Source: Epithemia pelagica
Taxonomy: Eukaryota; Protista; Bacillariophyta
Length of the DNA: 64,000 nt
Direction: 5' to 3'
NCBI GenBank assembly: GCA_946965045.2
Contig: OX337230.1
Span: forward strand, 2,418,001 to 2,482,000
The translations under genes and the position numbers were made by a program. Positions within the stretch are counted from its first letter, which is position 1; every line of letters begins with the position of its first letter. This document shows, in pieces, positions 11,113 through 47,468 of this stretch. The notes beneath the pieces were generated by a model, which worked only from the letters and a program-made list of their open reading frames with translations, did not search any database and was not told where the DNA came from.

Positions 11113-12672
11113 ATGGTCGCAAGAGTAAACGCTGACAATTGCACATCAAACAAAAGCAGCGATGAACAGGAGGCGACGCAATTGAACTCCATCGACGAAA
11201 CTGGAAAATCAGGTGACGGTTCTCAACAAGCAGGACAAGACGAGGAGGTAAAAGAAGAGACTGGTTGTTCCGTCAAACCAATTTCGTCTCAAGAAAACAC
11301 GGATTGCGATTCGTCTACGTATCAAGAGAACGAGGGGACAAGCCCGGGGTTAGAGGAAGAGAGTGCCCCTCTGCTAGACTCATGCTGCAGCACTCGGACT
11401 GAAAGCTCTTGTGATCCAATCAAGGATTCCAGTGAACCGACCCCAGACACTCCAAATGACAAGAAATCCATGCAACAATCAGAATCGTTTGGGGAACAAG
11501 TCGATGTGGGCGTACAGGAACCTCCCGTTGGTGGTGTCGAACAAATTTTTTCCAACTTTGAAGTACATGAAGAAATTGTCTTTGAAGAGCCAAGGACGAT
11601 TTCGGTTTCGGAAAGGATTTTGTCGTTTTTTCGTGATGGTACGCGTCGCAAAGCAAGTTCCTCCGACATTGAGGCATGGATCAAGCTGTCCTTGACCTTG
11701 GATGGACGTGACAAACTCACCAAGGTGCTGCAATATGTGGCGAGGTTTCTCGCGTGGTCACTGCAGGGAACATTCAAGAACCAAGCCAAACGATTGGACG
11801 CCTTAAAATCGTCCTTAAGTAACGGGCGCAAAGCGTTCCGCCTGGGACGAACCTTGATGGAAGTACAGACACTTCGAACCATGGGATTACTGGAACGCTT
11901 GCGCATGCACTGGAAACAAATATCCTTGGAATCGGACATGGATTGGACTAGCAATGGCAATACAAGCTCGTGTAGGCAACAATCACCACTTCTACGAAAT
12001 CATGGCACAAGCAGAAGCTCTCTCATGCGACGATTATCCACCAATATTGGCTTGGACTACGAGAGCAACTTGGACCTCGTGAGAAAGGTCTTGCGTCAGC
12101 AATCATTTGTAATTGAACAAATTCGACGAATGCCATCTCGTATTTATGAAATGTCGTTTCTGGAACAAGACGACACGTCCCTCCCGCTGTGGCAAATGTG
12201 CTTGGCGGCGGTGAAACTGGTTTCAATGTCCTGTTACTACCTTGGAGACAATTTCTCGTTTCTATCCGCATCGGGTGTGCTGGATGACTTTTCAGCCAAA
12301 CAAGAAAAGCGGATATCAAAACGGAGAGAATTGACCAACTGGGCGAGCATTGTTGCCAACAGGGCTGATTTTGTTTCTGGTGTCGTTGGATTGATTCTTA
12401 GTTGGAGAACATATCGAGAATTTTGTCAAGAAGAACAAGACATGAACGAGGATGACGAGGCCGCACAGCAACGACGGAGAGAAAAACACTTTGGACTTGT
12501 GTTGTCTTTGATCAAGAATTCGTGCGACCTTTTAACGTTCACGAACCATGCGGGTGTAGATATCTGGAGACAAAGTGTCGGCTTTCCTCTAAATGAAGGC
12601 ATTTACTGTATAGCTGGCTTTGCCTCCGCATTGTCTGTCCTCTGCGCCAAATTTCCAATGCATGAGGGATAA
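11113..12672 (+). CDS. PEX11: Peroxisomal biogenesis factor 11 family protein with a long acidic N-terminal extension (519 aa)
   Basis: PEX11 signature LSLTLDGRDKLTKVLQYVARF...SSLSNGRKAFRLG and C-terminal LIKNSCDLL...GFASAL segment. Confidence 0.8.
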   Translation: MVARVNADNCTSNKSSDEQEATQLNSIDETGKSGDGSQQAGQDEEVKEETGCSVKPISSQENTDCDSSTYQENEGTSPGLEEESAPLLDSCCSTRTESSCDPIKDSSEPTPDTPNDKKSMQQSESFGEQVDVGVQEPPVGGVEQIFSNFEVHEEIVFEEPRTISVSERILSFFRDGTRRKASSSDIEAWIKLSLTLDGRDKLTKVLQYVARFLAWSLQGTFKNQAKRLDALKSSLSNGRKAFRLGRTLMEVQTLRTMGLLERLRMHWKQISLESDMDWTSNGNTSSCRQQSPLLRNHGTSRSSLMRRLSTNIGLDYESNLDLVRKVLRQQSFVIEQIRRMPSRIYEMSFLEQDDTSLPLWQMCLAAVKLVSMSCYYLGDNFSFLSASGVLDDFSAKQEKRISKRRELTNWASIVANRADFVSGVVGLILSWRTYREFCQEEQDMNEDDEAAQQRRREKHFGLVLSLIKNSCDLLTFTNHAGVDIWRQSVGFPLNEGIYCIAGFASALSVLCAKFPMHEG

Positions 12673-13275
12673 ATCATTTTTTCTCCTTGGCGTCGCCCAA
12701 GGAATCTGAACGCCAACATCAACTGACAGTGTATCTCCCACTTTACGTGCGAACTTGTGGTCACTAGGACTTAAACTACCATTATGTCCGACTAGGGTGA
12801 AACTGCCATTTTCATTTTTATAGCACACTATGTTGTTTGTGACACAATCCATTTTATCTGCTACATGTCGAAGTTGTAGATATCCGTTTATATCTTATCT
12901 ACTCCTGGTTATAGGACAAAGACTTGCCCACTCTTCCACACGCGAAGAACAGGCATTCCGGAATTACTGTCCGTAAGTACTGCAATGGGGGTCGTCCTCA
13001 GCCGCACTGCTCACCGTGTCGGATGCACCAATAACGAGCGTCACATCCGTGCCATCAAAGGCGGGATTGATCTCTTCCATTTCAAAATCCGGAACACCGG
13101 CTTCGGCTAGCAGGACATTCAATTGTCCGGGCGTGCGTCCTGCCACTGGATGAATTCCAAATCGGACCTTCTTTCCCGCTGCTTTCAGGTCCTTTGCAAT
13201 GTCTGCAATGGCAAACTGTGCTTGAGCTACAGCCAGTCCATAATCACCACTCTTCGCGTCGAGGAGTGCTTGCGT
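12479..13275. repeat. Segment B: inverted duplicate of 39411-40260 (PEX11 3' end + intergenic + NNT 3' end)
   Basis: The reverse complement aligns to 39411-40260, e.g. ACGCAAGCACTCCTCGACGC, GGAGTAGATA, GTGGTCACTAGGACTTAAACTACCATTATGTCCGA and GAGAAAAACACTTTGGACTTGTGTTGTC, with substitutions and deletions. Confidence 0.92.
12913..13275 (-). pseudogene. NNT: NAD(P) transhydrogenase domain III fragment (truncated, with deletions)
   Basis: [40 protein letters not shown](T)[41 protein letters not shown]. It has internal deletions relative to the intact copy, and the last CDS segment is missing. Confidence 0.93.
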
Positions 13276-15217
13276 CTTGGCCATTCCATGAGCTTGTACC
13301 AGAGCTACCAACAGAGGTCCCTGGTGTTCCGGTGTCGTCCGGGACTCTGGAGTCGCCGACAAGAGGGATGGAATATACAAAAACGCATACAGGCACGTAT
13401 TCCTATATCAGAGTCTGTGGGGTTCGTTCTGTGTGGCCCGACATTTACAATACATACTTGCAATTGGGGTTGTGGTTTTGACTGCCACACACGTACGACA
13501 AGAACAACAAACTGGAACACAGACAACCTGTTCTGGGTCAGTATCGGGGACAAGGTTTTCCTCGTACACTTGTTCCAACGAAACGTTGGGTGTTTCCGAG
13601 GCATTCGTCGCCGCCACAAACAGAGCCTCGACTTTCTTGGCAATCGATTCTTCCGACACGGATAATTCCTCCTAGTTTGACTTGAATGGGAAGAAGGAGT
13701 GTTGGTTGTGATTCCATCAACGGCGAGTCGACGCTTGACTCAAACGCTTGGGGCCCGAACGAGGGTCGACCAGGTCACTGCATCTCCGGCTGGAATGGCA
13801 TCCACCACAATCCAACTGCCCACCAGTGTCAAGGTGGCCAACAATCAAACACACTCTGGCGATGAGGAGGATGACCCGAGTGTCACTCCGAGGCAGGTCG
13901 AGGTGGACCTGCAGCCACTTGTCGGACGACGATTCGGAATCCAGCCACGAGAACGACGGTGTCCCAGGACTCGTAATGACCGACAGGACTCCTCTGTCAA
14001 AGGTGATGGAGTCGGACAGGGCATTGACTCCAAGGCTTTTGGAGGCATCCATCCAGGGAGTTCTGCTAGCACTCGGTTTGGCTTGGGTTGTCACGACGAG
14101 ACATGATCCAACCAAGGGAACAGCATGGCCAGCAACAAGTTCCAATGCCGTCTTTGCATCTTGTGAATTGACTCTGTTTACTTCTTTTTTCCTCTTGTGT
14201 GAATGTATTGTCGGACTTTACCGTTACGACATCTGCTGTCTGATCCAACAAGCAGGCTGTTGCCAATCGGTGGGGAGTGGGGATGATGACATCAAAAGTC
14301 AAGAAAGGACAAAAATGATCGTTGCGAAGATGAAGATCCAAAGGTCGCGCCGACATTTGGGCGCGTTGTGGGAAAGTTGGCACGGAGTATTGTAGTCCCG
14401 TATCCCCGAGTCCCGAATTCGCTCCATTGCATCCGTAGGAGCGGGTAGATTCCGTAGGTGCTCCTAGTCGTATCGCAAGCAACGGGCAGGATGAGATGAG
14501 AGATCTGATGATGAAAGCACCCATTCTGATGAACGGTGGTTCCGATTGACAAAGGTAGATAATATTATGCTTGCTTCTTCCGAGGGCAGCAACCTTTTCC
14601 GTTGCTCGGTTTCGTACCTCCCACTCTGGAACTCAACTTTCTCGAGTGTGAGCTAAAAGGTTACCTGCATACTACTGCATACGTCCACATCTAGGTCTAG
14701 GTAGTAGTAGCCCTCGTGTGATGTTGGTAGGAGTAGTTGGTAGGAGTAGGAGTAGTTGGTTTGGTAGGCAGGTAGTTTCATGGTGAGAAAGGAGTCAACA
14801 TGGGGGTTCAAAATTTGAGGGGTTTGTCCCATTCGTTTGCGCTATGGCCGAGGGCCGAGCACCACACGGAAACGGAAGGGCGGCAACCATCACAACACGG
14901 TTTTTGCCTCTCCTCTTTCGATCGATCCGTCTTCTCTCCTCCGAAGGCAGTCTCTCGTGTTGCAGGGTCGCTCCAAAGCCTTCTGCAAACGGCACAGCAA
15001 GAAGTAGAAGTCTTTTGAAAGTACTAGAGGTTTGAATACGTGCAGTTCCAATACAATACTTGTGTTATATATAGATAAATAGATAGTTTTTGCCACCTCT
15101 TTGGAGTCAACCATACAGCAGGCCAATCTATGATCGACTTGCATATGACTAAAGGAGGATCGTCCTAATTGTGCAAACATAAAGAAGGCATCAGCCATTC
15201 ATTGGTTCTTGAGATCA

Positions 15218-16856
15218 TCACGACTCCGTCGGCACCAGCGTCCCAAACTTCACTTCCAACTTTGATCCCTCATTTTTGCCGTATACATCTTCGTCTTGAG
15301 TCAGAGGTTCACACAAACGCAAAGTGGCAGTCACTTCCGTTGCAGCGTTCGAATCTTTAATCTTGTCGTTGTCGAGGGGAAAATACAAAATCGACAATCC
15401 CCCGGGAGTTGCCTGGGCGCAGAGAACATCGGCCAAAGTCTCCACTGAACCTTCCATGCCGTATTTGACCTGGAGATTGGACACTACGACTCTGGCAGTT
15501 CCTTCGTTCTTCAAAAGCAGCGTGAGTCCGTTCCATAGGGAAGCGTCGGGATTGGTGCACTCGTCTCGGCCTCCATCCATTTGAAAGGAAGTCTTGGGGC
15601 AGGTGGCACAAGATCGTGTACCTTGAAGGTCCGTAGTCAGTGTATCATCCGTGCGTCCATTGTAACTGAGGGTGAAGGGCATGTCCGTCTGGAAGGTGTA
15701 TTTTACTTGACTGAGCCCACCATCCTGACAGCCGCCCCCACCAAGATCTGTTGGTCCCACAAACTGTTCTTGACCCACAGAAGCATCCCGGAATTCTTTG
15801 TATCTTGTGCCTGCTGAATTGGTAAAATCTAGAGGTGTGGACAACACAAAGAATGACGGACAGTCTGGAACTTCATCGTGCTTGCGGCGGATGACATTAC
15901 TGATAGAGCTTGTACCTCCTTGGGATGATGGTGTGCTGGGTTGGTACGGAAGAGTGGATACATGTCCACCCAATACAGAATGGGTACCTGCGGTAGTTCC
16001 CATGGTAGTTCCCATGGTAGTTCCCATGACAGTAACTTCTCCTTTTCGGTTTCCACGCCGTCCACCACGTGCCCTCTTCTTCTTCAAACTCGTAGAGGCG
16101 CCGGCATCCAATTTCTTGTCTTGCTTCTTCTGTTCTAAAAGGCGGTTCTGACGTCGTGCTCGCGTCCGCTTCTTTTGATGTGCATGTCAGTTCCTCAGTT
16201 GTCCCGGTGAACCCATCTGCGGGAAAGCAAACACTGCCCCCTCCCTTGCCCTTACCCTTACCCGAGACCATTATGTCCTCTTCTGGACGTCCAATGCCCG
16301 TCGCAAAGGCCAAGACGCAGAGTTGATCAGTAAAGGGGTTGAATCCGTCTTCATCAGCAAAATATGTGTCCAAGTTCACGCTTTCGGTTTCCCCATCGAG
16401 GCAAAAGCCCTCAGGCGTGTAGTCCAACTGCTTGAAAGGATCCATGGTTGGATCTAGCACTTTTCCGCCTTCTTTTTCAAGAAAGGCCAATGCGCATTCG
16501 GCGTCGTTGCCCTTGGACGATTTGGCAAGCAAATAGAATACTGTATCCAAACAGTAGCCAGGTTGCGAAGAGACAGTAAGTTCCAGTTCGTTGGTGTCAA
16601 GGATGAGTTCACCTTTGATCATGCCAATCGTTTTCCCCGGCGAGTTTCCTTCCTCCAGGCCAACGATAGGGACGTCGACTGGTCCAGGCGAACCCGCCAG
16701 ATCTATGGCGTTCGGTGATTCGAACTTGCATTCGGTAGCAGCAGAGCAAGGATCAGGATCGACTGCCTTCACCACAAAGCCTCCGGTGGAAAAAAGAACC
16801 CACAAGGACCCACAAAGAAGGGCACATCGACGTGCAACAAATGAGAAAAACATCAT
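15218..16856 (-). CDS. Secreted protein with two Cys-containing domains and a Lys/Arg/Gly-rich linker; one apparent frameshift (about 545 aa if corrected)
   Basis: Signal peptide MMFFSFVARRCALLCGSLWVLFSTGGFVVKA. ORFs 15897-16874 and 15218-16111 fuse if one T is removed from the T4 run at 16173-16176, giving TSKKRTRARRQNRLLEQKK. Also contains SGKGKGKG and MGTT repeats. Confidence 0.65.
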
Positions 16857-17294
16857 TCTGACAAATTTAGACAATCACAAAGATCTTCTTGACAGCAAAC
16901 GAGGATGACCAGTCCCGAAGATCGTTCTCGCAATTCAGAATGGGAATGAGGAGTTCCGCGTTCTTTCCCTCTTTTGGAGAAAATATGAGAGGACAAAGAG
17001 TGAAAAGGGGCTGGCTGATGGAGACAAGCCCGACCATCAATCCCATTGCACTCGCTAAAAGGCGAAGCGATAGGGATAAGCCCAACCACTCGACCAATAG
17101 CCCCTTTTCAATGAGGTTGGGTGAATGGTGAATGTGGAGGGGCGAAATTTTGCTTTTATTCGTGCAGGTTTCTACGAGAACAAGTACCTGCAATCTACGA
17201 ACACAGATCTGAAACTGGAACCATCGATCATGATCATCCTGGATACTCGCCCTATGAATTTGGCGACAAGAGACAAGATACCTTTCTAATTTCT

Positions 17295-18078
17295 TGTTAG
17301 AATTCTCACCGTCGATGGTGGTTAGATTCTACATCTCATCGATTCCCCATGTCACATAGCCTCGTGCTATCGCATCATGCCATCTAGCTTCGAGCTATGT
17401 TCCCTAGCTTCGTGCTATATCGACCTATATTTCTTCGCAAATCATGAAAAGTGAGAAAAGATTGACGAACTCACTCTCAAGACTAAACTGGGTCGTGCGG
17501 TATTACAACGGACGTAAATTTGGCCGTTGCTCGGACATTATACTTACGCCCTAAGCGTACGCGCCCGAAATCATCGAGCGCACCCAAGCGACATCCGAGC
17601 GCTGTTGGCATCTATCCGACCCAACGGTCTAAGTATCCCAAGCACAACACACGATCACGCGAGACCATATTTCCATTCCCACAATCTCCAAATTGTCAAC
17701 AAGCTGCGCGCCATGAAAACAACTATGCCAACCCAAAGCAAGAGCTGTTGACCCTGTATATGTTATCCGTCCACATATACATGTCATATACATCACATGA
17801 ATCGACTCCAACTATTCCAAACCTGTTGCCGCCAAGACCCTATGACACATGACCCTTGGCAGGACCGAACATTTCACGTAGACCTATCGTAGTAATCAAC
17901 ACACAATCTAACAATATCACCATTTATCACATCCTCTTTTGTGTCCTGACTATCCTTTTGATAGACTACGACTTGCTTTCCTCTCTTACCCGTGGAGAGG
18001 TTTGTATCGGTTGGTGACTACCTGATTGTCTGCTCTAACGAGCATTGATGTCCCTACGATTCAGAAAGAATTGTAACA
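17295..18078 (+). repeat. 5' LTR of copia-1
   Basis: TGTTAGAATTCTCACC...AGAATTGTAACA. About 6 substitutions versus the 3' LTR, counted by eye. Confidence 0.97.
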
Positions 18079-18114
18079 GCTTAACAGTCTCAGAGCTTAT
18101 TTCCTTGTGGTTTC

Positions 18115-18905
18115 ATGGATACTAACGAGCTTATCACTCCTGTACGACAGATCTATCGAGCCAACCTGTATCCGGGCAGCCCGATACCCTGGTGCAGCAG
18201 GAACTGGTGCCGACGCCGAAGGCAGCCAACACATCGGTCAACATCTTCGTCGACAGTTCCAACAGCAACCCATTCGAGACTCCAACCCAGCCTCACGCTC
18301 CGATCCCTGCGCCGTTGCTTCGGCCCCCGAGTCCGCCTCGTCGGCTCGTCCCTTCTCGATCCCGTCGTACCACCCGGTTGATTGCTGATCATATCAAGTA
18401 CTTCCGTCAACCAACTTCTTCGACCTTTGATCCCGAGATCATCTGTGGGGAGACCCAGATCGAACGCCAGTTCCAATCGGTGACCCACATCGTCGACCAA
18501 GAAGACATTGACCGTCTGAACGACCAACTTCATCATTCTCCGAGGCATCGCCTCATCTTGGCCGCCCTCTCGGGCAACCCCATCCGTACTGTCCACCTCC
18601 GCTTCCTAACCTTCGAGCGCCCAACTGGATACTACAATACCATCTACGTCGTGAACACGACGACTTGCCCTCTGCCTCCTAACGTTGTACGCCTAGATAA
18701 CTACGTTGCCTACATCCACGAGGTCCATACCATCGAGGACCATCGTGCAACTATCTTCCCTTTGCGTGCAGAGGCCGAGAACCACTTGGCTGAAGGTGAT
18801 ACCCCTTCTTCTGTTGCTTGTGCTGCCCCATCTGAGCCTAGAAACGACTCTGATTATTCGGAAGAGAGTGGAGATTCGGAAACCGAAGCTTACTCTCATA
18901 GTTAA
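18115..18905 (+). CDS. Extra ORF (ORF0) upstream of gag in copia-1, split by one frameshift
   Basis: The ATG-18115 frame (MDTNELITPVRQIYRANLYP) and the 237-codon open frame 18192-18905 would fuse into about 263 aa if one base were added. Pro-rich segment, globular core (LIADHIKYFRQ...RFLTFERPTGYYNTIYVV) and acidic tail. Confidence 0.5.
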
Positions 18906-19211
18906 CTCCCGTCCTCTCAAAACCTTTCCAAGACTTAAACTCAACGCACATCCGGGTGCCCTTGGTCGCACAACACGCAACACATTCCCGTCAAATCGCG
19001 AAAATTCGGCAAAAATTTGTTGAAACTCGGCGAAAATTTGTCGGAATCAACGGAAATTTCCAGGAGTCGCACATCACAACACACATCCGGGTATCACATA
19101 AGTGGTACATACGTGGCACACGTGGTACATCCGGGTTCACATCACATCACACATTAAATAAACCACATCACACCGCACATTAAATAAACATCGAACCAAC
19201 CAAATAACACC

Positions 19212-22200
19212 ATGGATCCTCAATCACCCAAGACACCTACGACTCCTAAGGGAGAAGATAACCAAGACAATGTCTCGAACACAGACCTATTCGACCACAT
19301 CATATTTACTGTCTACCAATTCTTTACCAAGGAAAGGGCCGACTACTTAATGAAGTGGATGAAATACCATGGTTTTGAGAACATTACCCATGTTATCTTG
19401 TATATGCAAACTAATACCGAGGAATCCATGAACGAACTGACACAATACAAGGTCAACAAACAGACACATATCTACAAGGCCCCACAAGACAGCAGATCAA
19501 GCTCTTGGCTTATTGGGCCATATACAAGACCAATGAAATTCAAGACAAGCTATCCAATAGCGACTGGATGAACCTAACGAGGAAAGAGTTCAACACTTGG
19601 AGGATCAACACAGATTTCTCTAAGGGACCACCTAGCCAAGTTCCAGTCTCGCCAATGAAGTCACCGTCATCTGTGAAATCTGTCAGCACAGTTACTGCCG
19701 CATCCCAATCTCAACAAGACCTTACAGCATTCAGAAAGGGAACTAAGCGCGACGCAACTGCGTATGAGGTATTCAAGGATGAACGATACTACGATTCATT
19801 CTGGCGTGTATTCAAGACTACAGCTAAGGCTCAAGGCCTATCCAACGTTCTGAATTTCAAATACACACCACCCCATGATGATGAGTATGCCGAAGAACTT
19901 TTTCAAGAGCAACAAGTATTTCTTTACTCCGTTCTTGTCCGTATCATTCAGACTGACCAAGGTCGAGCCTATGTAGGTGAACATGAACATGATGAAGATG
20001 CGCGTGCCGTATTGCAGAAGTTACACTCTTTGCATACCGAATCCAACCTAGCAAAACGAGAAGTCCTCCGTTTAACCAACTACATTTCCAATCTACGTCT
20101 TGACGACACATGGCGAGGAACAACACGTCAATTTCTTCTACACTTTCAAGAGCAGCTACGTTTGCTAGACAATCTAGTGACATTGTCTGATCGCATCCCT
20201 GATCATACCAGGATGACCTTCCTCATGCAAGCTGTAGAAAAGGTACCTGATCTCTGCCGAGTCAAGATCTTGGATAATGTGGTGAACACCAAATCCGGTG
20301 CAAAATCCCTTTGCTATCAATCATACTTCTGTCTCCTTCTAGACGCAGCTTATGACCATGATCAAGCAACCCAGTCATCTGCTCATAGTCGCCGTAGACA
20401 TGTCAAACAACATGAATCACTATATGGCCAAGATACAGATGCTGACATAACCTCACAAGATGATATGGAGTATCATGTCCACAACACCAAAGTGACATCT
20501 GAATCTCCATCCTCTTCGTCCAAGGTTAGTCTACCGCGTGACCTATGGTTCAAACTTTCTGAAGAAGATCGCAAGTTGATCATTGAGTATAACAAGATGA
20601 TTCAAACACCTTCATCAACAACACCGAGGAAAGTGCAAACACATGCCCTCGACATTGATCCGGAACCTGATCCTGACCCCAACCAAGTTGCATCTGATGA
20701 CGACTCACCTGGCGCAGTCCCTGAGCATCCAGATGATTCAGATCCGGTTACACAATTTATCAACCAAGCCATGACGACTGATATCAATCACCCGGCAACT
20801 GACCTGACAAGTGTTCTTTCTAACGCCAAGTCCAAGACGAGCAAGAAGGTTACTTTCAAAGCCAACATGCATAAACAAGCAGGACATGTTCCACGCTATT
20901 TGTTTTCTAGGAAATCTACTTTACCAGGAAATCAATTGATTGACTGTGGTGCTAATGGAGGACTTGCTGGTTCTGACATGCGCATCCTTTCTAAGACTGG
21001 CCGCCATATCACTATTGTGGGTATTGATAACCATGAACTTACTGGACTTCCTGTCGTCACATGTGCCGCAAAGTTTGAGACCAATGATGGACCTATTGTC
21101 GGCATCTTCAATGAATATGCTTATTATGGAAAGGGCTTATCTATCCATGCTCCTGGTCAATTCGAGCATTTTGGACTTGCAGTTGATGAACGATCTGTTA
21201 AAGTTGATGGTAAACAACGCATCACTACACTTGATGGTCGTGCTATACCCCTTCACATCAAGGATGGGCTAGCCTACATCCACTCCTTGGGTATCCCCAG
21301 CGACGATGACATGAATACCTTACCTCAGATCATCTTCACGTCACCCGACACATGGGATCCTGGTGTTCTGGACCATTCGTATTCTCCCACACCCTCTGAC
21401 AATGATCCTGATTGGAAACACGTCAAGACTGATGGTAGTATGTCAAACCATCCATATGACAACTATGGGGAGTACACTGATCGTGTTGTTTGTAACCTCA
21501 ATCTCCTTTTGGATCTCCCATACGATCATGGACCTGACGACGCACCCTTCTTTACTTTCTATGCTGACGCAGAAGGTAATGATCCTACACTTCATGCCTC
21601 TGTCCACCGTCGTTACCAGGAAGCGTATGACTGGAAGAAGTTCCGTCCATTCTTTGGTTGGCAATCTGAAGATGTTATTGCCGATACGTTCAAGCACACT
21701 ACACGTAATGGTAGCATTACTTTTGACCACGACATCCTCAAGAAACATTTCAAGGCTCGCAATCCGGTCCTTAATATACCTCGACGTCATGAACCCTTTG
21801 CTACTGACTCGGTTTTCTAGAGTATCTCGACCAACAAAGATTTGTGCGACTTTACCGCCATGGTCAACAGCAGGGAGTCAACCAAACAGTTTGTCAATAC
21901 TCTTCAGGACAACATCCGGATTCGTGGTGCCATGGAGACTCTTATCAGTGATGGTGGTTCATCTCTCATCTCTCAAAAGGTCAAAGACATTCTTCGCACT
22001 TTGCTTATTGGGGAGTATCGATCCGAACCTTATCATCAACACCAGAATAAGGCTGAAAACCGTTACCAGACCGTCAAACGTATGACCAACGCTCTCATGA
22101 ATGCCACTGGTTGCCCTGCCAACACCTGGCTTCTTTGCCTTGAGTATGTCTGTGACTTATTGAACCATACATCATCACCCACCCATTCCGGTCGCACTCC

Positions 22201-24868
22201 TCTTGAGGCTCTCTCCGGACGCCCACCCGACATTACTCATCTCTTGTTCTTTCCTTTCTGGGATGAGGTTTACTACCGTGTCGACCCCACTGAACCCAAT
22301 TCTGGTTCATATCCATCTTCTTCTGATGAGAAACTTGGCCACTGGGTTGGTTTTGCTCACAACGTTGGTGATTCTTTTACTTGGAAGATTCTCACCCAGG
22401 ATAACCAGATAATCTACCGTTCTACCGTTCGCCGTGTTGAATCCACTACACCTAACCTACGTGTGGATCGACCTTCAGGGGAGGATTTGTCTGAGAAGGA
22501 TGACAATGATAAGCAAGCTGACACTGTCTTCATTCGCAGTGATAGTGAAGATCCATCCAAACCAATGCCCACGATCGATTTTGACGACATGATAGGACGC
22601 ACATTCCTATGCGACACAGAAGAAAATGGGGAGCGACACCGTGCACGTGTCATCAAACGAGTCATTGATCTTAATGAAGAAGCAACAAAACAGGAAGAAC
22701 GTGTCAAGTACATCTACCGAAAGACAAATTCTGATGTTGATGAGATGATATCCTATAATCAACTCATGGAGTATATCGAACGAGATAACCAAGCTCAAAC
22801 CTCTGGAGATAATCTTTTCAGGTTCAGGGACGTCATTGCCCATCAAGGCCCACTGAACACAACTGATCCAGATTACAAGGGGAGCAAATATAATTTGCTT
22901 GTTGATTGGGAAACTGGGGAGACTACCTATGAACCTTTATCACTCATCGCCAATGATGATCCGATCACTGTAGCAATTTATGGAAAGAAACATGGTTTAC
23001 TCAACAAACCTGGATGGAAGCATTTGAAACGTTATGTCAAAACAAGCAAACGTCTCATTCGAGCAGCCAAACAGTCAAGGATTAAACAAGTTCACCATTC
23101 CGTCAAGTATAAGTTTGGATTCCAAGTACCACGCAATTATGAGGAAGCTGTCGCTCTTGATAAACAACATGGCAACACAAAGTGGCAGGATGCAACAGAA
23201 TTAGAATTGTCACAGATCCAGTCCTACAAGACATTCAAGGATTTTGGGAAAGCCATCTTCATTAAAGGGAAAGTATCCAATGCACCTGAAGGATATCATA
23301 AGATACGTGTACATCTTGTCTTTGACGTAAAACATGATGGACGACATAAAGCAAGACTTGTCGCAGATGGACATCTCACAAAAGAACCTGTTGAGACAAT
23401 CTATTCAGGTGTTGTTTCCATTCGCAACCTCCGCATTGCCTTATTCCTGGGTACTTTGAATGACTTGGAAATATGGGGAGCAGATATTGGAAACGCATAT
23501 CTGGAAGCCTTGACAGGGGAGAAAATCTTCATTGTCGCAGGACCTGAATTCAAGGAATTAGAAGGTCACATCCTGATTATATACAAGGCACTTTATGGAT
23601 TGAAGTCATCAGGCGCACGCTGGCATGATGTCTTATTCAATGTTTTGACAGACATGGGATTTTCACCAAGCAAAGCAGATCCGGATATCTGGATGAGGAA
23701 AGCACCTGGAGAAGACTGTTACGAATACATTGCCGTATACGTTGATGACTTAGCCATTATTTCTACTGATCCTGGGAATATCTGCAAGATCCTGAAGGAG
23801 AAATACAACTTCAAACTCAAAGGAGATGGACCTATTGATTTCCACTTGGGATGTTGCTACACCAAGGATTCTGATGGAACATTAGTAGCAGATCCAAGAC
23901 GCTACATTGGTAAGATGATGGACACTTTCGAACGAATCTTCAAGGAGAAACCCAAGAAAGCCAAAACACCTCTTATTGGTGGAGACCATCCTGAATTGGA
24001 TGATTCTGAGCTCCTTGATGAAGAAGGCACTAGCCATTTCCAAACTCTGATTGGACAACTCCAATGGGTGATCACTATTGGTCGTTTTGACGTCTTCACC
24101 GCTACAATGACGCTATCACGCTTTCGTGCTGCTCGGAGGAAAGGACATCTTGATAGAGCCAAGCGTATCTATGGATACCTTGCACATCTCCCAGAAGGCG
24201 CAATCAGATTTAGGATTGGAGAGCCTGATTATTCAAGTCTTCCTACCCAAGAATTTGATTGGACTCGCACTGTCTATTCGAATGCAAGTGAACGTATTCC
24301 TGAAGACTGCCCAACACCTCTTGGCCGCTATGTTACCACAACTCATTATGTTGATGCCAATCTCATGCATGACATAGTCACTGGTAAATCTGTCACTGCT
24401 GTTCTACATTTGCTGAACGACACACCTATTGACTGGTACAGCAAGAGACAGAGCACGGTGGAAACTGCTACCTATGGATCCGAGTTTGTGGCTGCAAGGA
24501 CAGCAAAAGATCAGATTACAGAATTACGACATTCTCTCCGCTACCTTGGAGTACCTATCCGAGAGCGAAGTTACATGTACGGAGATAACAGATCTGTTGT
24601 GCTCAATGCAACCGTTCCTCATTCCATACTATCCAAGAGACACCATCTTCTGTCATACCACCGAGTTTGTGAAGCCATCGCAGCAAAGTATGTTGCATTC
24701 TACTGGAAAGATGGAAAGACCAACCCTGCCGATATCCTTAGCAAACATTGGGATTTCGTATCTATTTGGCCCATGCTCAAGCCATTATTGTTTTGGAAAG
24801 GAGAAGTTCAAGACCTCAACAAATCCAATGATGACAAGGCTGAAACGACGAGTTGTGGGGAGTGTTAG
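19212..24868 (+). pseudogene. gag-pol polyprotein of copia-1 (frameshift at 19480-19483; inverted integrase segment 21818-21877)
   Basis: Protease LIDCGANGG; integrase TDSVF / LISDGG / QNKAENRY; RT LVFDVKHDGRHKARLV, KALYGLK, YVDD; RNase H YVDANL, TYGSEF, YGDNRS, NPADILSK. Confidence 0.93.
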
Positions 24869-35927: not shown

Positions 35928-36085
35928 TCTCGTCGTCGTGTCGCCATCATCAGCCTCCATTTGCAAGAACACCGTTTCTCTCTCCACGAAAACGAGAATC
36001 TTGTACGAGAGACAGAACACGCTCGGTTCTCTCATTACACAGCCTCCAACGAGAAGACAACCTAAAAAAACAAAAGATTCAAGCC

Positions 36086-39000: not shown

Positions 39001-39914
39001 CCTTTTTGAACCCAGGCCTTCTTGGTGCGCTGGGCGGTGACGCCGCTTCGGCGGTCCAACTCGGTAGTCTGGGAATGGTTGCCGCCCTCTCGTCAGTTCT
39101 GGGATGGCATTTGACGGCGAGCATTGGTGGTGCTGACATGCCTGTGGTGATCACCGTGTTGAACTCCTATTCAGGCTGGGCTCTCTGTGCAGAAGGCTTT
39201 CTTCTCAATAACCCTCTTTTGTCCCAAGTTGGTGCATTGATTGGATTTTCCGGTGCCATTTTGACCTGGATTATGTGCGAAGCCATGGGCCGTGATGTCG
39301 TTTCCGTCATTTTGGGAGGCGCAGGAACATCAACAGCACCTGCTATTTCTGGTGACGAGAATGCCATGATTCCTGAAGGAGAGGTGACGACGACTACCAC
39401 CGACGTGGTCACGCAAGCACTCCTCGACGCCAAGAATGTGATCATCACTCCTGGTTATGGACTGGCTGTAGCTCAAGCACAGTTTGCCATTGCAGACATT
39501 GCAAAGGACCTGAAAGCAGTGGGAAAGAATGTCCGATTTGGAATTCATCCAGTGGCAGGACGCATGCCCGGACAATTGAATGTCCTGCTGGCCGAAGCCG
39601 GTGTACCATACGATATGGTGTTTGAAATGGAAGAGATCAATCCCGACTTTGATAGCACGGATGTGACGCTCGTTATTGGTGCATCCGACACGGTGAGCAG
39701 TGCGGCTGAGGACGACCCCCATTGCAGCATTTACGGCATGCCTGTTCTTCGCGTGTGGAAGAGTGGACAAGTCTTTGTCCTAAAGCGTTCTATCGGCAAT
39801 ACAGGTTATGCTGGAATGCAGAATCCAATTCTGTTCAAGGACAATACACATGTTTTGTTGGGAGACGCCAAGGACAGTTGCGAAGCTCTTCGCACAGCCA
39901 TTCACAGCGCTTAG
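36086..39914 (+). CDS. NNT: Proton-translocating NAD(P) transhydrogenase, fused alpha-beta (dI-dII-dIII), 2 exons, 1191 aa, with bipartite presequence
   Basis: Exons 36086-36578 and 36832-39914 (GT-AG intron; [13 protein letters not shown]). Motifs IGVLKE...[69 protein letters not shown]. Confidence 0.97.
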
Positions 39915-40129
39915 GAGTAGATACGATATTTAAATGGATATCTACATCTTCGTCATGTAGGAGGTAAAATGGATTGTGTCGCAAAGAACACAGTTGCTAT
40001 GAAAATGACATTTTCACTCTAATCGGACATAATGGTAGTAGTTTAAGTCCTAACTAGTGACCACAACTGCCCACGAAAATTGGAAGATACACAGTGTCTA
40101 TGTTGTCGTTCAGAATCCTTGGGAGATGC

Positions 40130-40260
40130 CATCATGCATTGGAAATTTGGCGCAGAAATGCCCTCATTGAGAGGAAAGCCGGCAGTTTGTCTGCCGATAT
40201 CTACACCCGAATGGTTCATAAAAACGATCAAAGACAACACAAGTCCAAAGTGTTTTTCTC
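40130..40260 (-). pseudogene. PEX11: PEX11 3'-end fragment within inverted duplicate B'
   Basis: REKHFGLVLSLI..NHSGVDI.RQ..GFPLNEGI matches the PEX11 C-terminus at 12479-12672, with deletions. Confidence 0.88.
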
Positions 40261-40643
40261 GGCGAGATCTTTGATAGTATCTTTCTTCGAGGCCGGCTGT
40301 GCCCCCGTTTGCCGTTGCGAATCCTTTCATTGGCTCGTGGTCACAGATTTTGAAGTCGTAGTAAGAAAACCCGTCCGTTGGGCATACGGAGCACCGTCAT
40401 GGGTGCACGGGTACAAAAGTCATTCCAAACAAAGAAGTGAACTAAAATATAGGTTACAGAGTCACTACTCCCTATCTTCTCGATTTTCATACGTACGACA
40501 GACATACTTTCTTAGTCCCCTCAAACAGTACTCGATTCCTTTGAGAACTGTTTGCCATCCCAGTAGTAAGTGTATTCGGGCCAACTAGCCCAGGAAACCT
40601 CAAGACCTGCACAAAACCTCATAAATAGAGATGAGGAAAGGAC

Positions 40644-43600
40644 TCACTCTGGGGATCCATGATCATCAGTAATATCCCAAAGGACCAGACCCAACAAATG
40701 ATTGCGTTTCTGTCCTCCTGGAATCACCTTGGTGGCCAAATCGGCTGGATTATGCTGTGTGGGAATATGTGTAGTCAACAATTCACCCATGGCAACAGCT
40801 TCTCTGACAGCATGATAGCAAATAGAATTGGACTTCTTCTTCAGCGATGATTCCGGTTTCGATGTATTATGAATCACGGACATGTTGTCACCATAAACAT
40901 ATGTAGGACCAGACAACGGCACTCCCATCATCCGTAATTTGTAGCGTAGTCCCCTGACGGCCTCCATGCCCGTCTTCATTGCGACAAACTCAGCTCCAAA
41001 AACGGATGTTTCGATGGTCGCTTGTCGCTTGGTATACCACATAATAGGTGCCATATTCATAAAGATGAAGAATCCAGTTCTAGATCGCCGTACCATCTTG
41101 TCACCAGCATGATCCGAGTCAACATACAGCCGCAGATCCACCTCTTTACCACGTGCCTTTGGTGCATTCGGTGGAACTGCCTCCTTTACATCGCCGTAGA
41201 ACTCCTTCCAGTCGCAATCTTCACGAAATTCTCGGAGGTCTATCTCGGGATAGGTCGGATCAAATGCCATCCTGGCATTGTGCTTGATTTTCAAATAGGA
41301 ATACATATGGAATACTGCTTCCAAATGTCCTTGTCGTGGACTTGCCACTTGGGATGCTAACAATGATGTTTCGGTCATGATATCCACCCTTCCCAGTTCA
41401 ACCATCCATCTGAGGACGCCAATCTGGGACTGGTAGAATGACACCTCGTCCACATTCAGTTGATCTGTCACGTCAAGAACTGGGTCATATTCTGATGGGA
41501 ACGGAGTCGCCGCGCGTTTTGCAAGCTTGCGGCCGTTCCAAATACGTCTCAACATTCGAAACAGCTTCTTGTACATACTTGCTCGAACTTATAGCCCAAC
41601 TGACAACGGAATTGGGCATGGTCATGGGCTTAAGCTTCCCTCCAAGGTACATGTCAGGATTTCCGATCGAGCCCGGCTTCATAGGGAAGAAATGATCTAA
41701 CTCGTGTAACATCGCAGCCGCATCATGCGATATAGCCAAGACATCGTCTACGTACAGCAATACATAGGCGTAGTACTTGTGACCGTCACTCGGACGTGTC
41801 ATAGGCTTCATCCACAAGTCTCGATCAGCACCCAAGCACGGATCGTACCCAAGAGTTCTCATACAACTCGCAAGGTGGTTGCGGAAGCTTGCACCGGCAC
41901 TCTTTAACCCATACAACGCTCGTACAATATATGCACGCTTCCCAGCGTTGGACCCGAACTCGGGGCCCAGTACAGTCCAGATTTTCTCACTGTTCGGCGC
42001 AGTTAAATAAGCATTCTTGATGTCGGACGTTTTAACCTCTAGGTCGTTGAGAGCGGCAATAGTGAGGGCAATACGAACACTTTCTCGAGATACAACACTG
42101 GCATAAGTCAATGTTGCTGGTGCCTCTGTTGTGTGTCCGCCCGCTACAAACCGTGCTTTTCTCCTGAAATCTTCCATTTTTACGTCGAAAACCATGTGGC
42201 ATCGGATCTCCTGGAAGCCAGGAGCTGGTTTCTCGTCGTCTTCCATCAACTTGAACGCCACTCGAACAGCTTCCATCTCTTTCTCGATGGCCTTTCGCCA
42301 CAAGTCGTTGCCGTTCCTTCTGTCAAGTTCGTATGCTTCGGCAACAGTCTTGGGGATTTCGATCCCAAACTTGTGCGTCCGCTTGTGGTAGCGGCTATTG
42401 ACGGCGGCGAGTATCCGATCTCGTCGTCGGAGGAATTTATTCACCCACCAATCAAACGCTGGCTCATTTTCAATCTGCTTTGCGACGGCGTACTCCGCCA
42501 CTTCAATCGGATTTGATTCCTTCAGTCCAGCCAGGCGTTCCCAGGACGTTGACCCGTCGCGCCACTGGACGCACAACTCCCACCCTTTCGTCGTCTTCTT
42601 CTTGTGCTTCCGCCCTCGGACAACGACATGGCGGTTATCGTGGTCGACAGCGGCTTTGGTCTTGCGATGATCAACGATGCTGTCCAGCAACAAGAATTGG
42701 TTTCCCTCAGCATCGCACTGCGCATACATATTTTCCGCGATGACGTTCGCGGCATACTCTGACGTCTCGCCGTCTGGAAACTCGACAACATATACTCTCG
42801 AGTCTAGAATCGGGTTGTGGGACGACGTCCCCTTGAGACGGCCATCACTGGTCTTGGACCGTCTTTTCACCTTGCCCGTCACCATTGCATCACCCTTCGG
42901 CAACAAGACGTCAGCTCCAACGTAGTTGTCGTAGGTGTCTGGTGTGATGTCATCAATGTCGGGTGCAATCGGTGGCTTGGGGTCATCGTCGTCTTCATAC
43001 GCCTCGTAGGTCGGCGTTTCCACATCAACTAGACCATCGTAGTCTTCGATTTTAGCTACACCGCCTAACTTCTCGTTGACCTTACTCGTGTAGTCTTTCC
43101 TCTTCTCTATTTCAGTCGGGTCACGGATTTCGTCGTCCGTCAGATGTCGGTAGGTCGAGCGAATCTTGATCATTCCTGACTCGGCTAGGATCTTAATTGC
43201 ATGTGCGGGTCCCATGTCCGTCGCAGGACCTAGGTACCTACCCAGTTTCTCCTTGTCTTCCGGGTAGTTGGCCGCTGAGTCGTAGTAATAAACCCAGTCG
43301 TACCACCCATATCCAGCCAAGAGTGAAATGTCGAAGGTCTCCCCGTACATTGCCGTTTCCGGGACTTGACCTGACAGCTCGAAATTACTATGACATGTAG
43401 CCGATCTGATATAGGCTTCCAACTCGAGGCAATGATCCCACAATACCTTAGGAGATTTAGTTGAGACCATTTTCCGTCCAGTACCACGCTTCAACTCCCT
43501 AATTGCACTCTCAGCCGCATTTGCCCATGGAGTATAGGGCTCCAACTGTTTCACTCGACAACCAGCCTCTCTAGACTTCTTCCTGAACTTGCCCTTGACC

Positions 43601-44700
43601 TGTTCCGCGGCACCGTCCATGATTAGTTCCGGTGGACGGCCTTCCCTCTGGAGCAACAACGACAAAGCTTCGTGTGCATCGCCTTTCGAGGCCAGAGGGT
43701 ACGCTCTAGTCCATCCATTCCTTGCCGTGAAGACTTGGGCACAAGTATTACCCAGCCTAGACTTCACCTTCGAAAACATAGTGTCCGTGAATAAGGGATG
43801 AGGCAATGGCCGGTATCGGTGAAACCGGTCGTTCGTCGTGAACCTCTTGGTCAGAGGGTTCAATGTGGTACGTAGACCACGTTGCGTCGTCACTCGAAGG
43901 GTATCCGCTGCACGTTCCAATCCACATCCCCATCGACGTGCCAAAGTCTTGGCATCGATAGCTTTTCCAGAAGGGGTAGTTTGTGTTACGGAAAGAGTCG
44001 CCACGCGTGCTTGCAGGGCAGTCGCGAAGCATGCGGTTTCCGACGATCGCGAATCAGAAAGCAAAGTCGTGAAAGGGTCATTGGGTCCCCTTGAGCGAAC
44101 GGTGGAAATCGATCGTTGGAGGGCCGCTCGGGCCGACATTTCATCCCGAGCGAAAGAGTCATTCTGGGGGTCCCACGGCGGGTCAGGACTAGTCAAATCA
44201 AAGCGACGTTATGAAGCATATTCATCGGAAGTGGGGGTCCTTGTAGGGAAATAGGAAGTGACACCACATAAATCAAGGGGTATCACAAAATCCTCATCGT
44301 CCTGATCTTTCAGGACCAGTGCGTGTGTCTTATTGTCGGGATTATCGGTCAAGAATTTCGGTTGGTCCGAAACTTGCACGTCATTCATCCACAACTGCAT
44401 AGGGCACAGGAGGTTGTGAGTAAGCGATGGTATATAAATGGCCTGGTTCACGAGTAGGATCAATACTTCACCGGTATCGGGGCAATCATAAGCTAGAGCC
44501 GCACTTATAGTCTTGCAACTCTTGTGAACCACGCCCTGAGAAGAATCATATCCCTTGACATCCACAGGGCGGCCATAGTCCTGTACAACCATCGCAGACC
44601 TTCCAACAACACACGTGTCCGCATGACTATCAAGCTCGGTACGAGACTCGCCCTCGTCGGACGTGTCAACCGCACCGACACGCACTGAGCGGACCACCGC
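40644..44700 (-). pseudogene. Pol of copia-2, in frame with gag after a UGA; internal TAA at 44209-44211 and a frameshift near 41540
   Basis: Protease TELDSHADTCVVG; integrase TDTMFS / LIMDG / ANAAESAIRE; RT CHMVFDVKM, RALYGLK, YVDD; RNase H YVDSDH, VFGAEF, YGDNMSV, NPADLATK. Confidence 0.92.
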
Positions 44701-46209
44701 TCATTTTCGTGATTTCTTCTGGCGGGTTAGCGCCGGATTGTCGCGATTCGACTCGGGCTTGCGCTTTCCCGCAGGCTTGGCATCATCATCAGAACTATCG
44801 GACGATGAGTCATTGCCGCTGGCTCGAGATGGATCGCGCAATGGTGGCAAGCTCATTGAATTCTTCGCGAGAGCGGACAGGGCAGCGATGTTCCTCTGAA
44901 ACTTCTTGGAAAAGAGCTTCATCTCTTTGGGCTTGCTGGAATCGCCCTTGCCCGTGCGATTCTCCCGCATTTCCTTCAACTTCTTGCGCTGGGCGTGAGA
45001 AAGCTTCTGGTATTCGTCTTTCTTATAATATCGGTCTTCTACACCGACACTAGCTTTCCCCCCAGACTTAGTCTTACCAGAATTAGAATCAGTCTTGGTA
45101 CTGATACTCGATACTTGAGACTGACTAGCCGATGGGCGCTGTGCTAAGAAATCCTTAAACAAGGAGACGGCACGGGTGAAATCGGCTTGTAGGGAATCAT
45201 CCGACATGATTCGCGTCTTCACCGCTTGAAATTGGTCGGTCTTGATTCCGTCCATCAGATGCCGAACCTTAGAACGGTCATCGATGCCAGGATGTACGCC
45301 CTGCTGGCGTAACCCTTCTAAGATCGCGTGCTGATTCACGTGAATCTTACAGTATTTCTCGAAGTTGAACCGCTTATGTTCACCGTTGTAACTCGTGTTC
45401 ATAAGTTTCCGTTCAGCTTCGTTGGCCAAATTGTTCGCGTTGTTCGGCCCTAAGTAATGGTCAAACAAGGCTTGATAAGCCGCTCGCCCGTCGCGATTTC
45501 GGCTCGCCTTGCGGATGTAGGTAGAACAATCCATCCGTTCACACATAGCGGACAAGCGGATCCAAACCTTGGCCCGATCCTGCAAGTACTGACGGGTAAA
45601 GCCGTCGTTCGGTCCGTTTCCAACACGGTGACGAGCGCGTGCGATCATCTCAGCCTCGTCGGACTCAAATCCACCTTGCGGGTCAGCTCCGGGGAATTCG
45701 TCCGTCCGTATCACATACGCCAAAGGTATACCGGACGTGCCTCGGCACTCGGCGAAATACTCCTTAATCAACTCGATGTTCCGCGGCCAATCACGATTGT
45801 CGAGCTCGGGTGCTTCCGGATCATCGTGCATGGTCTCATATTCTTTGAGGTCTCGCATAGGGCGAATGTTCGCCATCGTCAAATCGTTCGGCGTGGTGGC
45901 CCGATCGATGCGGATACGGTGGCGGACAAAATAACATGCCAACTTGAGATTCGTCTCGGCTAGGATAGAAACTTCAAAGCCTGGATTAGGGACAGGCGGC
46001 GGAGCTGCCACTCCTGCCGCGGCGGCAGGAGGAGCTTGGACACCACCGGGGCGACGGACGGCCTTGCAGAGATTGATGACGCCGTCGTCGTCCAAGTCGC
46101 GAAGATCTTCGATCGAGGAGAGTCCTTGGCGGTCCACAAGGTACTGGGATGCCGGGTTGGAGAACTGGAGGCGGATGAACGCCTGACGCATTGCAGCTGG
46201 AGCGGCCAT
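44701..46209 (-). CDS. Gag of copia-2 (502 aa)
   Basis: Intact ORF from MAAPAAMRQ containing RRPGG, RDWPRNIE..EYF...GTSGIPLAYVIR, RDGRAAY.ALFDHYLG, FEKY and EDRYY..EY..LS, ending KKSRK-TGA. Confidence 0.85.
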   Translation of the reverse strand: MAAPAAMRQAFIRLQFSNPASQYLVDRQGLSSIEDLRDLDDDGVINLCKAVRRPGGVQAPPAAAAGVAAPPPVPNPGFEVSILAETNLKLACYFVRHRIRIDRATTPNDLTMANIRPMRDLKEYETMHDDPEAPELDNRDWPRNIELIKEYFAECRGTSGIPLAYVIRTDEFPGADPQGGFESDEAEMIARARHRVGNGPNDGFTRQYLQDRAKVWIRLSAMCERMDCSTYIRKASRNRDGRAAYQALFDHYLGPNNANNLANEAERKLMNTSYNGEHKRFNFEKYCKIHVNQHAILEGLRQQGVHPGIDDRSKVRHLMDGIKTDQFQAVKTRIMSDDSLQADFTRAVSLFKDFLAQRPSASQSQVSSISTKTDSNSGKTKSGGKASVGVEDRYYKKDEYQKLSHAQRKKLKEMRENRTGKGDSSKPKEMKLFSKKFQRNIAALSALAKNSMSLPPLRDPSRASGNDSSSDSSDDDAKPAGKRKPESNRDNPALTRQKKSRK

Positions 46210-47468
46210 GGTAATCAAAAACAACAATCAACTCTTAACTTCTTGAAACACTTCCTCAAAAGTGAGGTTTCCAAGACGAGTTTTGCCATGATTTTAATCC
46301 ATTACCTACGTAGAACCACTACTGGCTTGCACACAATCCTTGATTGTTGCTCAAAGTCGGTCGTGCCAGACCTAACCCACATGATCTTTGGCCCTAATTG
46401 GCTAGATCCACATAGGAGCCCGGAAAAGTCTTTTCGTCGGTTCCACAAGACACCCGAACCACGTCTAGGTATATTTTGTCCTGCAGTGAAAGGCCTCACA
46501 TGGAGCTAAGCTCATGTGCTCTCGGCCAGAGGGATAACAAACCGCAAAATGTGAGACAAGTCCCAAACGGTTGCGATGCGACACTGTACTTATTCCAAAA
46601 TTCAGCACTGTGCAACAATGAGTACCCCCCCTCCGTTGAGAAGGCTGTTTCGGACACATGCCCCCATTTCATCCACATGAAGACTGGTCCCAGGAATATT
46701 CTCCGGACCATTTCCCAGAGTAAAATGCGAATCACACATATAACTGGTTTTGGGATGCGTTCTGATCTCGAATTCCGCAACCATGGCGGATCTGGTTCAC
46801 TGGGATGGATCCAGTAGGGAAGACCGTCGCCTTTCCCCCAATCTGCGCACCTTTTCGCAGACAACGGTAGCGCCAAACAATAGTAACGTACCATTATCAT
46901 TGTGCCTGCACGAGCCCATTCACAGGTGCAATAGGTCAACCAATGATCCCCGACAGTTGGGTTATTTCTGTCGGTTTGCCTTATAGGCTTGGGGCATTAC
47001 GCCAACGGTCGCAGCCATCTGTCCAGGCATTGGACCGTCTACTTCCATGTTATTGACCAGTTTGGGTCTGATAAACTAAGAAAACCCGTCCGTTGGGCAT
47101 ACGGAGCACCGTCATGGGTGCACGGGTACAAAAGTCATTCCAAACAAAGAAGTGAACTAAAATATAGGTTACAGAGTCACTACTCCCTATCTTCTCGATT
47201 TTCATACGTACGACAGACATACTTTCTTAGTAGTGTTCGTTTGCATGACAAGGACCAGCTGGTGGATCACCGACTGTGGATTGGTGTGTAGTGATTCGCG
47301 CCTCAATCGCGAACCCATGTGCGACCGGCTGCCTGTCCAAACCCATCCACATCACCGTTTCCGAAAAACTTGAAAAAACACTGGAAGGATACCCTGATGG
47401 GTCTCATTGTTCGTCCTTCCGAAGGTACAACAGACAAGGTTCTGTGGTTGGGGATTGTCCGTTTACAA

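Follow-up and report, generated by a model that had tools for sequence, protein, structure and literature searches.

A probable micro-inversion of the NNT gene with duplicated breakpoint regions in the diatom Epithemia pelagica

In a 64-kb stretch of Epithemia pelagica DNA (the window), the gene for NNT, a transhydrogenase, is bordered by two pairs of inverted duplications made of pieces of PEX11, of NNT itself and of the spacer in front of a HECT-domain gene. We consider it probable, at roughly three chances in four, that a micro-inversion of NNT by staggered breaks duplicated both breakpoint regions and that the left junction was filled secondarily.

Results

Two inverted pairs were found within the window by both an ungapped repeat search and a gapped blastn comparison of the window with itself. 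In the gapped comparison, 12479-12906 matches 40260-39913 (E 5e-61) and 12912-13275 matches 39782-39411 (E 2e-136), forming the pair B and B', while 35750-35832 matches 47312-47230 (E 9e-27) and 35828-35927 matches 40362-40263 (E 5e-36, 94% match), forming the pair D' and D; the alignment carries D' left to 35697 across a 22-base indel. These are the pairs that had been proposed from the sequence-only reading, whose ends for D' and D prove right to within 2 bases. Along the window the copies run outer-left B, inner-left D', inner-right B' and outer-right D, the order that a staggered-break inversion predicts, and the inverted segment measures 4.6 kb and holds a single gene. B is 797 bases long and D' 231 bases. 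A search of the whole 60.5-Mb assembly returned just these two copies of each, so B and D are not dispersed repeats; they are ancestrally unique genic sequences rather than transposons. The genes, duplications and right junction are laid out as follows.

11113-12672, + strand: PEX11 (A and the start of B), Pfam PF05648, intact to its stop codon
12479-13275: B, left copy, covering the live PEX11 end (last 64 codons), the former intergenic spacer and the dead 3' piece of NNT
12907-13275, - strand: dead NNT 3' fragment, 79% amino-acid identity to the NNT of L012 (a related diatom contig)
35697-35927: D', copied from the former 5' spacer of NNT and HECT; matches 47341-47230 and 40362-40263 in inverted orientation
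36089-39914, + strand: NNT (C' and part of B'), likely start 36089, intact to its stop codon
39411-40260: B', right copy, covering the live NNT end (last 168 codons), the spacer and the dead 3' piece of PEX11
40090-40260, - strand: dead PEX11 3' fragment, region matched by the L012 PEX11 protein in tblastn
40261-40262: junction J2 between B' and D, two filler bases, read from the sequence and the alignments
40263-40362: D, first part, inverted match to 35828-35927
40363-47229, - strand: Copia-2, LTR retrotransposon with an RVT_2 domain (Pfam), inserted in D
47230-47341: D, second part, opening with the second copy of the Copia-2 target duplication
47397-50633, + strand: HECT-domain gene (E), several exons, apparently intact, start codon read from the sequence

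Pfam searches confirmed the identities first given to PEX11, NNT and HECT. The PEX11 residues encoded by 11620-12666 share 55% identity with the L012 PEX11, reaching one residue short of its end. NNT has one intron, at ~36600-36800, and an N-terminus read from the sequence; its exons lie within 35627-36679 and 36780-39914 on the + strand, carry the Pfam domains AlaDh_PNT_N/C, PNTB_4TM and PNTB, and encode a protein 86% identical to the L012 NNT over 1036 residues. From the likely start of NNT, D' now lies 162-392 bases upstream. The HECT C-lobe falls in 49452-50633 (+, Pfam), and the Epithemia clementina protein P0180 matches the window gene exon by exon over residues 60-1059. The same genome holds a 61%-identical HECT paralogue on contig C4; the HECT match P0179 was at first taken for the gene of the L012 relative on another contig, and reciprocal search identified it as this own-genome paralogue. 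Exon 2 of NNT and the final exon of the HECT gene were each searched singly.

The reciprocal fragments are decayed, in agreement with the initial proposal that each gene kept one functional copy. The dead NNT fragment follows PEX11 and is collinear with the NNT 3' end in L012; it bears 12- and 9-base deletions and a 13-base insertion, and its last 125 bases, with the stop codon, are gone. Polarised with L012 as outgroup, 23 changes in the NNT piece fall on the dead branch and 1 on the live one, besides four indels. The dead PEX11 fragment has lost 21 and 37 bases and its stop codon, and every frame is interrupted; just beyond the old PEX11 stop, the spacer of the B' copy has a further 22-base deletion. 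In the PEX11 piece, the same polarisation places 13 changes on the dead branch and 3 on the live branch, in addition to the deletions.

The divergence of the copies, which had been put forward as a means of dating the event, is consistent with a single origin. Kimura two-parameter (K2P) distances come to 0.062 for the piece of NNT and 0.100 for the end of PEX11, in each of which one copy is constrained by selection; for the spacer, where both copies are free, the distance is 0.159, and for D it is 0.072. All blocks fit one event at ~0.06-0.08 substitutions per site per lineage. A RIP-like mutation bias was ruled out, transitions and transversions between the copies being about equal in number. 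These distances also bear on whether haplotypes or collapsed repeats were misjoined in the assembly. Such misjoins can create inverted duplications, but allelic copies would be nearly identical, whereas these differ by 6-16% substitutions and, within B, by 12 gap events; the polarity of the changes is that expected of pseudogene decay, and the assembly has no second haplotype of the locus. An assembly artefact is thus the least probable of the explanations considered, and we give it almost no weight.

At the right junction, which is clean, the last base of B' is 40260 and the first of D is 40263; no repeat, transposon end or target duplication was found where they meet. The interruption of D is a separate matter: the two 152-base LTRs of Copia-2 (40363-40514 and 47078-47229) are identical, the element is flanked by the 5-base target duplication GTAGT (40358-40362 and 47230-47234), and D' keeps the uninterrupted, empty target site. 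The insertion of Copia-2, ~170 bases ahead of the probable start of HECT, is very recent.

Copia, MITE-like and GIY-YIG elements abound in the region, which might suggest that the segment was flipped by ectopic recombination between inverted repeats already in place, or by alternative transposition driven by a transposon. However, the repeats are pieces of unique flanking genes with two copies genome-wide, and each copy runs into a different live gene, an outcome not expected of recombination between old repeats. Transposition is further opposed by a B'/D junction that has neither a transposon end nor a target duplication, and by the LTR distances (0.008 for Copia-1, described below, and 0 for Copia-2), which make both LTR-dated Copia elements far younger than the duplications. 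We regard this explanation as very improbable.

The left junction is more complicated, being filled by 22.4 kb of DNA (X, 13276-35696) with the following components.

13276-17294: U, single-copy unclassified DNA directly abutting B
17295-25646, + strand: Copia-1, LTR retrotransposon nested in X, RVT_2 domain (Pfam)
25652-26519: unclassified single-copy stretch
26520-27828: 1.3-kb repeat (own-genome DNA searches)
27930-30212: 2.3-kb multi-copy element, with an ORF giving a weak Pfam GIY-YIG match
~30271 through 32547: old degraded Copia relic (translated match to Copia reverse transcriptase), probably continuing past the nested MITE-like repeat
32548-33071: MITE-like repeat (own-genome DNA searches)
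35260-35678: MITE-like repeat (own-genome DNA searches)
Last 18 bases of X, before D': unassigned

X is mostly transposon-derived and at least partly younger than the duplications; Copia-1 has TG..CA ends, a TTTCT target duplication and 784-base LTRs that are 99.2% identical. The earlier description of the insert as TE-rich holds for the greater part of it, with the exception of ~4.9 kb of single-copy unclassified DNA in U and in 25652-26519. On its minus strand U carries a pair of long ORFs that overlap each other (15218-16874), and the first of them opens with a signal-peptide-like sequence. DNA and protein searches revealed no second copy of U in the genome, and it gave no Pfam match, no homologue in the word search and no Atlas match. 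U was accordingly rejected as a transposon (own-genome DNA and protein and translated searches negative) and as a conserved gene (Pfam, Atlas and word searches negative), and comparison with the DNA upstream of NNT in L012 was negative as well. Since single-copy DNA lies against B, a TE-rich insert does not fully explain the left junction, and insertion exactly between two joined ends needs capture during repair or later deletion. Self-BLAST of the window showed no NNT remnant in X, and no remnant of X was found beside HECT.

Comparison with close relatives rests on one locus, L012, in which the order is abhydrolase(-), cyclin(+), PEX11(+), NNT(-), collinear with window positions 5005-13275. 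PEX11 and NNT are tail to tail there, and the live NNT of the window matches L012 on the opposite strand, so that NNT is inverted relative to this relative; L012 itself has no inverted repeats that we could find. No HECT homologue is present within 5.7 kb upstream of the L012 NNT. E. clementina has its HECT-like gene (ACA910_002580) on one contig and PEX11 (ACA910_019557) on another, and its NNT is absent among the 120 matches listed. A metagenome scan with the NNT N-terminal domain produced 26 loci, none of which links NNT to HECT and only one of which links NNT to PEX11. This one, the more distant diatom contig L016, has the order PEX11(+), SET gene(-), NNT(+), and the orientation of NNT beside PEX11 has therefore changed more than once. 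The ancestral order PEX11(+), NNT(-), HECT(+) assumed by the sequence-only reading is thus upheld for PEX11 and NNT, whose arrangement L012 keeps, and finds no support from these relatives for HECT. As a result, an adjacency of NNT and HECT before the event rests on the model and the D/D' copies, and, given the paralogue on C4, the position of HECT in the window may be derived.

Discussion

We propose the following sequence of events for the NNT locus. The ancestral chromosome would have carried PEX11(+), NNT(-), a short shared 5' spacer and HECT(+). One pair of offset breaks may have enclosed the ~800 bases in which the 3' ends of PEX11 and NNT converge, and a second pair a stretch of ~230 bases within the spacer in front of NNT. 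If the overhangs were filled in, or if sister chromatids with breaks at different positions were united, end joining that put the middle piece back in reverse would yield the order B, D', NNT(+), B', D, in which each enclosed stretch is now present twice and inverted. Thanks to the copies, PEX11 would have retained its last 64 codons and 3' flank and NNT its last 168 codons and 3' flank, while NNT and HECT would have kept ~390 and ~290 bases, respectively, of their own upstream DNA. The half-copies that had become redundant would then have decayed, 22.4 kb of DNA, mostly from transposons, would have come to occupy the left junction, either later or possibly during repair, and the Copia element would have landed in D very recently. 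The rebuilt spacer between NNT and HECT amounts to 162 + 231 + 56 = 449 bases, which is an ordinary head-to-head distance and makes the ancestor plausible. The layout of the copies, the clean right junction, the change of orientation against the outgroup, the reciprocal decay and the agreement of the ages are observed directly; the adjacency to HECT is the part of the initial proposal that the relatives do not bear out. We infer the break-and-fill-in mechanism, that adjacency and the secondary nature of X from these observations.

The strongest competitor, which we nevertheless judge to be unlikely, is a complex or multi-step rearrangement in place of one simple inversion. Its appeal lies in the single-copy U, located exactly where a simple inversion should have brought two ends together, in the separation of HECT from NNT in both relatives examined (L012 and E. 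clementina), and in a neighbourhood that is different again in L016. Three variants can be envisaged, each requiring more steps or coincident breakpoints than an inversion with secondary filling, and X holds no trace of NNT that would speak for them. In the first, a long right-hand offset would have duplicated D together with the backbone of X, the second copy being later deleted down to D; this would have stripped the HECT promoter to within 56 bases of the start codon. In the second, template switching of the FoSTeS/MMBIR type would have copied B, jumped to U, run backwards through D, NNT and B and resumed at D, a course of events that calls for a second, source copy of U in the genome; none was found. 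In the third, an inverted NNT cassette would have been inserted near HECT and the original copy then deleted, which leaves unexplained both the inverted D flanking the cassette and the clean abutment of B' and D.

The staggered-break inversion that we favour has close precedents. Ranz et al. 2007 described inverted breakpoint duplications at Drosophila inversions, in a study of 29 chromosomal inversions distinguishing fly species, and explained them by a staggered-break model (PMC1885836). Those duplications have a median of 321 bases, a maximum of ~1.9 kb and ~88% identity (PMC1885836), a range into which the NNT-locus duplications fall in size (797 and 231 bases) and identity. Shared features include inverted duplications that lie at both breakpoints in outer/inner, inner/outer order and consist of mostly genic, formerly unique sequence, degeneration of one copy of each duplicated gene piece, and an end-joining-type junction without repeats, which here is the right junction. 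The locus differs from the fly cases in its diatom host, in the 4.6-kb segment with a single gene, in the placement of both left-hand breaks in coding sequence and of the right-hand pair in a shared 5' spacer, and in having one junction buried under 22 kb. The mechanism is thus already known from Drosophila, and the NNT locus adds nothing new in that respect. The alternative-transposition inversions at maize p1/p2, which carry transposon termini and target-site duplications at their junctions (PMC8225341), resemble the NNT case as small inversions in a transposon-rich setting. They are unlike it in that the intact junction here has neither termini nor target duplications and the duplications consist of 231 and 797 bases of host genes.

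What the locus records, in a good state of preservation, is how an inversion that cut two coding genes and the upstream spacer of a third could be fixed with none of them destroyed: the breakpoint copies preserved the ends of the coding sequences, their 3' flanks and part of the shared promoter. A published comparison of the nuclear genomes of E. pelagica and E. clementina detected no significant syntenic blocks (PMC12377750), and against this background such events offer a concrete and countable mechanism for rapid change in gene order, to which the locus contributes one datum toward a genome-wide count in diatoms. It is a speculative extension, and one we hold only tentatively, that micro-inversions of a few kilobases, duplicating their own breakpoints, may routinely reshuffle diatom chromosomes. 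If so, the rescue of cut genes by the copies would allow these events to be fixed even in gene-dense DNA, and would help to explain how synteny is lost quickly in diatoms without loss of genes. The PEX11-NNT neighbourhood itself appears to have flipped on more than one occasion among diatoms.

Inverted duplications at the breakpoints

The window (G000:C3:2418001-2482000, in its own 60.5-Mb, 23-contig assembly) carries a genuine micro-inversion, well preserved and with its breakpoints duplicated, of a kind already known. Two inverted pairs, B/B' across the convergent 3' ends of PEX11 and NNT and D/D' in the proposed 5' spacer between NNT and HECT, were recovered both by an ungapped repeat search and by gapped self-blastn of the window.

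Genes, inverted pairs (gapped self-blastn) and inserted element
11113-12672, +, PEX11 (Pfam)
12479-12906 with 40260-39913, inverted, part of B/B' (E 5e-61)
12912-13275 with 39782-39411, inverted, part of B/B' (E 2e-136)
35750-35832 with 47312-47230, inverted, part of D'/D
35828-35927 with 40362-40263, inverted, part of D'/D
from 36089 (probable start), +, NNT, two exons (Pfam; signal-peptide-like sequence begins here)
40363-47229 (40358-47234 with target duplication), Copia-2, interrupting D (identical 152-base LTRs, GTAGT target duplication)
49452-50633, +, HECT C-lobe (Pfam)

Exons served one by one as separate search queries. Alignment carries the left edge of D' to 35697, across a 22-base indel, and the duplication boundaries of the sequence-only reading are therefore right to within two bases by repeat search, self-blastn and alignment. 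In a whole-assembly search B and D were each present solely as their one inverted pair. On the left the breaks cut into coding regions, with 64 codons of PEX11 and 168 of NNT still to come before the stop. The right-hand pair brackets 231 bases in a head-to-head spacer rebuilt at 449 bases; upstream distances from this stretch are 162 bases to the NNT start and 56 to the HECT start (likely at 47397). At the right junction B' ends at 40260 and D starts at 40263, two bases lying in between, and no repeat was found at 40260-40263.

D' (35697-35927) retains a single, uninterrupted GTAGT site, and D was therefore once continuous; D' also provides the empty-site control for Copia-2. This very recent insertion, roughly 170 bases upstream of the probable HECT start codon, may alter HECT expression.

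The layout, duplication sizes and decay at this locus all fit the staggered-break model proposed for Drosophila, where such duplications are present in 17 of 29 inversions (median 321 bases, maximum about 1.9 kb, about 88% identity; PMC1885836). Diatoms were unmentioned among the matches listed in a full-text literature search. No part of the window resembled human sequence. Elsewhere in the window is a perfect 48-base inverted repeat (61482-61529 and 63149-63196), its arms 1.6 kb apart, and elsewhere in the genome a second NNT gene (G000:C13:1846446-1852090; L003, L005) of about 69% DNA identity.

Decay and age of the copies

That the reciprocal fragments decayed is borne out when differences are polarised with the related diatom's PEX11-NNT locus, L012, as outgroup. 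In the NNT piece, 23 of 26 differences fall on the left, dead copy and one on the live copy (two ambiguous); deletions of 12 and 9 bases, an insertion of 13 and the loss of its last 125 bases further mark the dead copy. The right copy of the PEX11 piece, the dead one, accounts for 13 changes against three in the live one (seven ambiguous), besides deletions of 21 and 37 bases and the loss of its stop codon.

K2P distances between copies (substitutions only)
NNT piece, 0.062, one copy constrained
PEX11 end, 0.100, one copy constrained
Spacer, 0.159, both copies free
D, 0.072, constraint not known

One event would be expected to give this pattern, with about 0.06-0.08 substitutions per site in each lineage; the 70% that BLAST gives for B's left part stems from indels, not substitutions. 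RIP-like mutation was ruled out, since transitions and transversions between copies are about equal. Both Copia insertions long postdate the inversion, given LTR distances of 0.008 (Copia-1) and 0 (Copia-2).

Polarity of the inversion

Beyond this genome, PEX11 has its nearest relative, at 55% identity, on an ENA contig of 827.5 kb. L012 has the order abhydrolase(-), cyclin(+), PEX11(+), NNT(-), the PEX11-NNT order that had been proposed as ancestral. By translated comparison it is collinear with window 5005-13275, including the dead NNT fragment at 12967-13275 (-), the counterpart of the 3' end of its NNT; the live NNT (36347-39911) aligns in the opposite orientation, and the dead PEX11 fragment 40157-40363 (-) matches the end of its PEX11. 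Because of this collinearity, the opposite strand of the live NNT and the lack of inverted repeats in L012, convergent PEX11/NNT is the ancestral state, with the flip in the window's lineage.

The left junction

The weak point of the inversion reading is X, the 22.4-kb stretch that sits exactly between the two ends a simple inversion would join.

Contents of X (13276-35696)
17295-25646, Copia-1 (TTTCT target duplication)
27930-30212, 2.3-kb multi-copy element (607-residue ORF, weak GIY-YIG match)
32548-33071 and 35260-35678, two MITE-like repeats (short terminal inverted repeats)
1.3-kb repeat, recognisable transposon
Old Copia relic, seen at protein level only

The description of X as TE-rich holds for these elements but not for 13276-17294 and 25652-26519, which are single-copy, have no relatives in Pfam, Atlas or database searches and are absent from L012. 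X may have been taken in during repair, may have come in later with subsequent deletion of a flanking remnant, or may reflect an event more complex than a simple inversion. The GIY-YIG element, with at least four other copies at 96-97% identity and many at about 70-73%, looks like a recently active family, and the MITE-like repeat at 35260-35678 moved recently, sharing 99% identity with its copy at C13:2033928-2034319. Two overlapping long ORFs in single-copy DNA (15218-16874, -; 325 and 297 residues), the first opening with a signal-peptide-like stretch, found a homologue in none of the searches and suggest a gene that is either an orphan or recently broken.

The NNT-HECT neighbourhood

The sequence-only reading also placed HECT beside NNT before the inversion, an adjacency that we infer from the model and the D/D' copies alone and that the relatives do not support: NNT adjoins HECT in none of those examined. 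The 5.7 kb upstream of NNT in L012 hold piggyBac-like fragments, lack HECT and have no match anywhere in the window's genome. In E. clementina, for which no significant syntenic blocks with E. pelagica are reported (PMC12377750), a HECT-like gene and PEX11 lie on different contigs. The window's HECT has a paralogue on C4 (G000:C4:1273934-1277007; 61% protein identity over the last exon); the protein match P0179, considered as a relative's HECT on another contig, is this paralogue and thus uninformative on HECT position in a relative.

The piggyBac-type transposase (DDE_Tnp_1_7) fragments at L012:20251-21147, about 4.4 kb upstream of NNT, indicate that the NNT upstream region gathers insertions in the relative's lineage too. 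PEX11 and NNT are linked as well on a more distant diatom metagenome contig (L016:1-9897), in the different arrangement PEX11(+), SET-domain gene(-), NNT(+), Tic22(-), EDR2_C(-). The neighbourhood has thus seen repeated rearrangement, and recurrent local flips are suggested.
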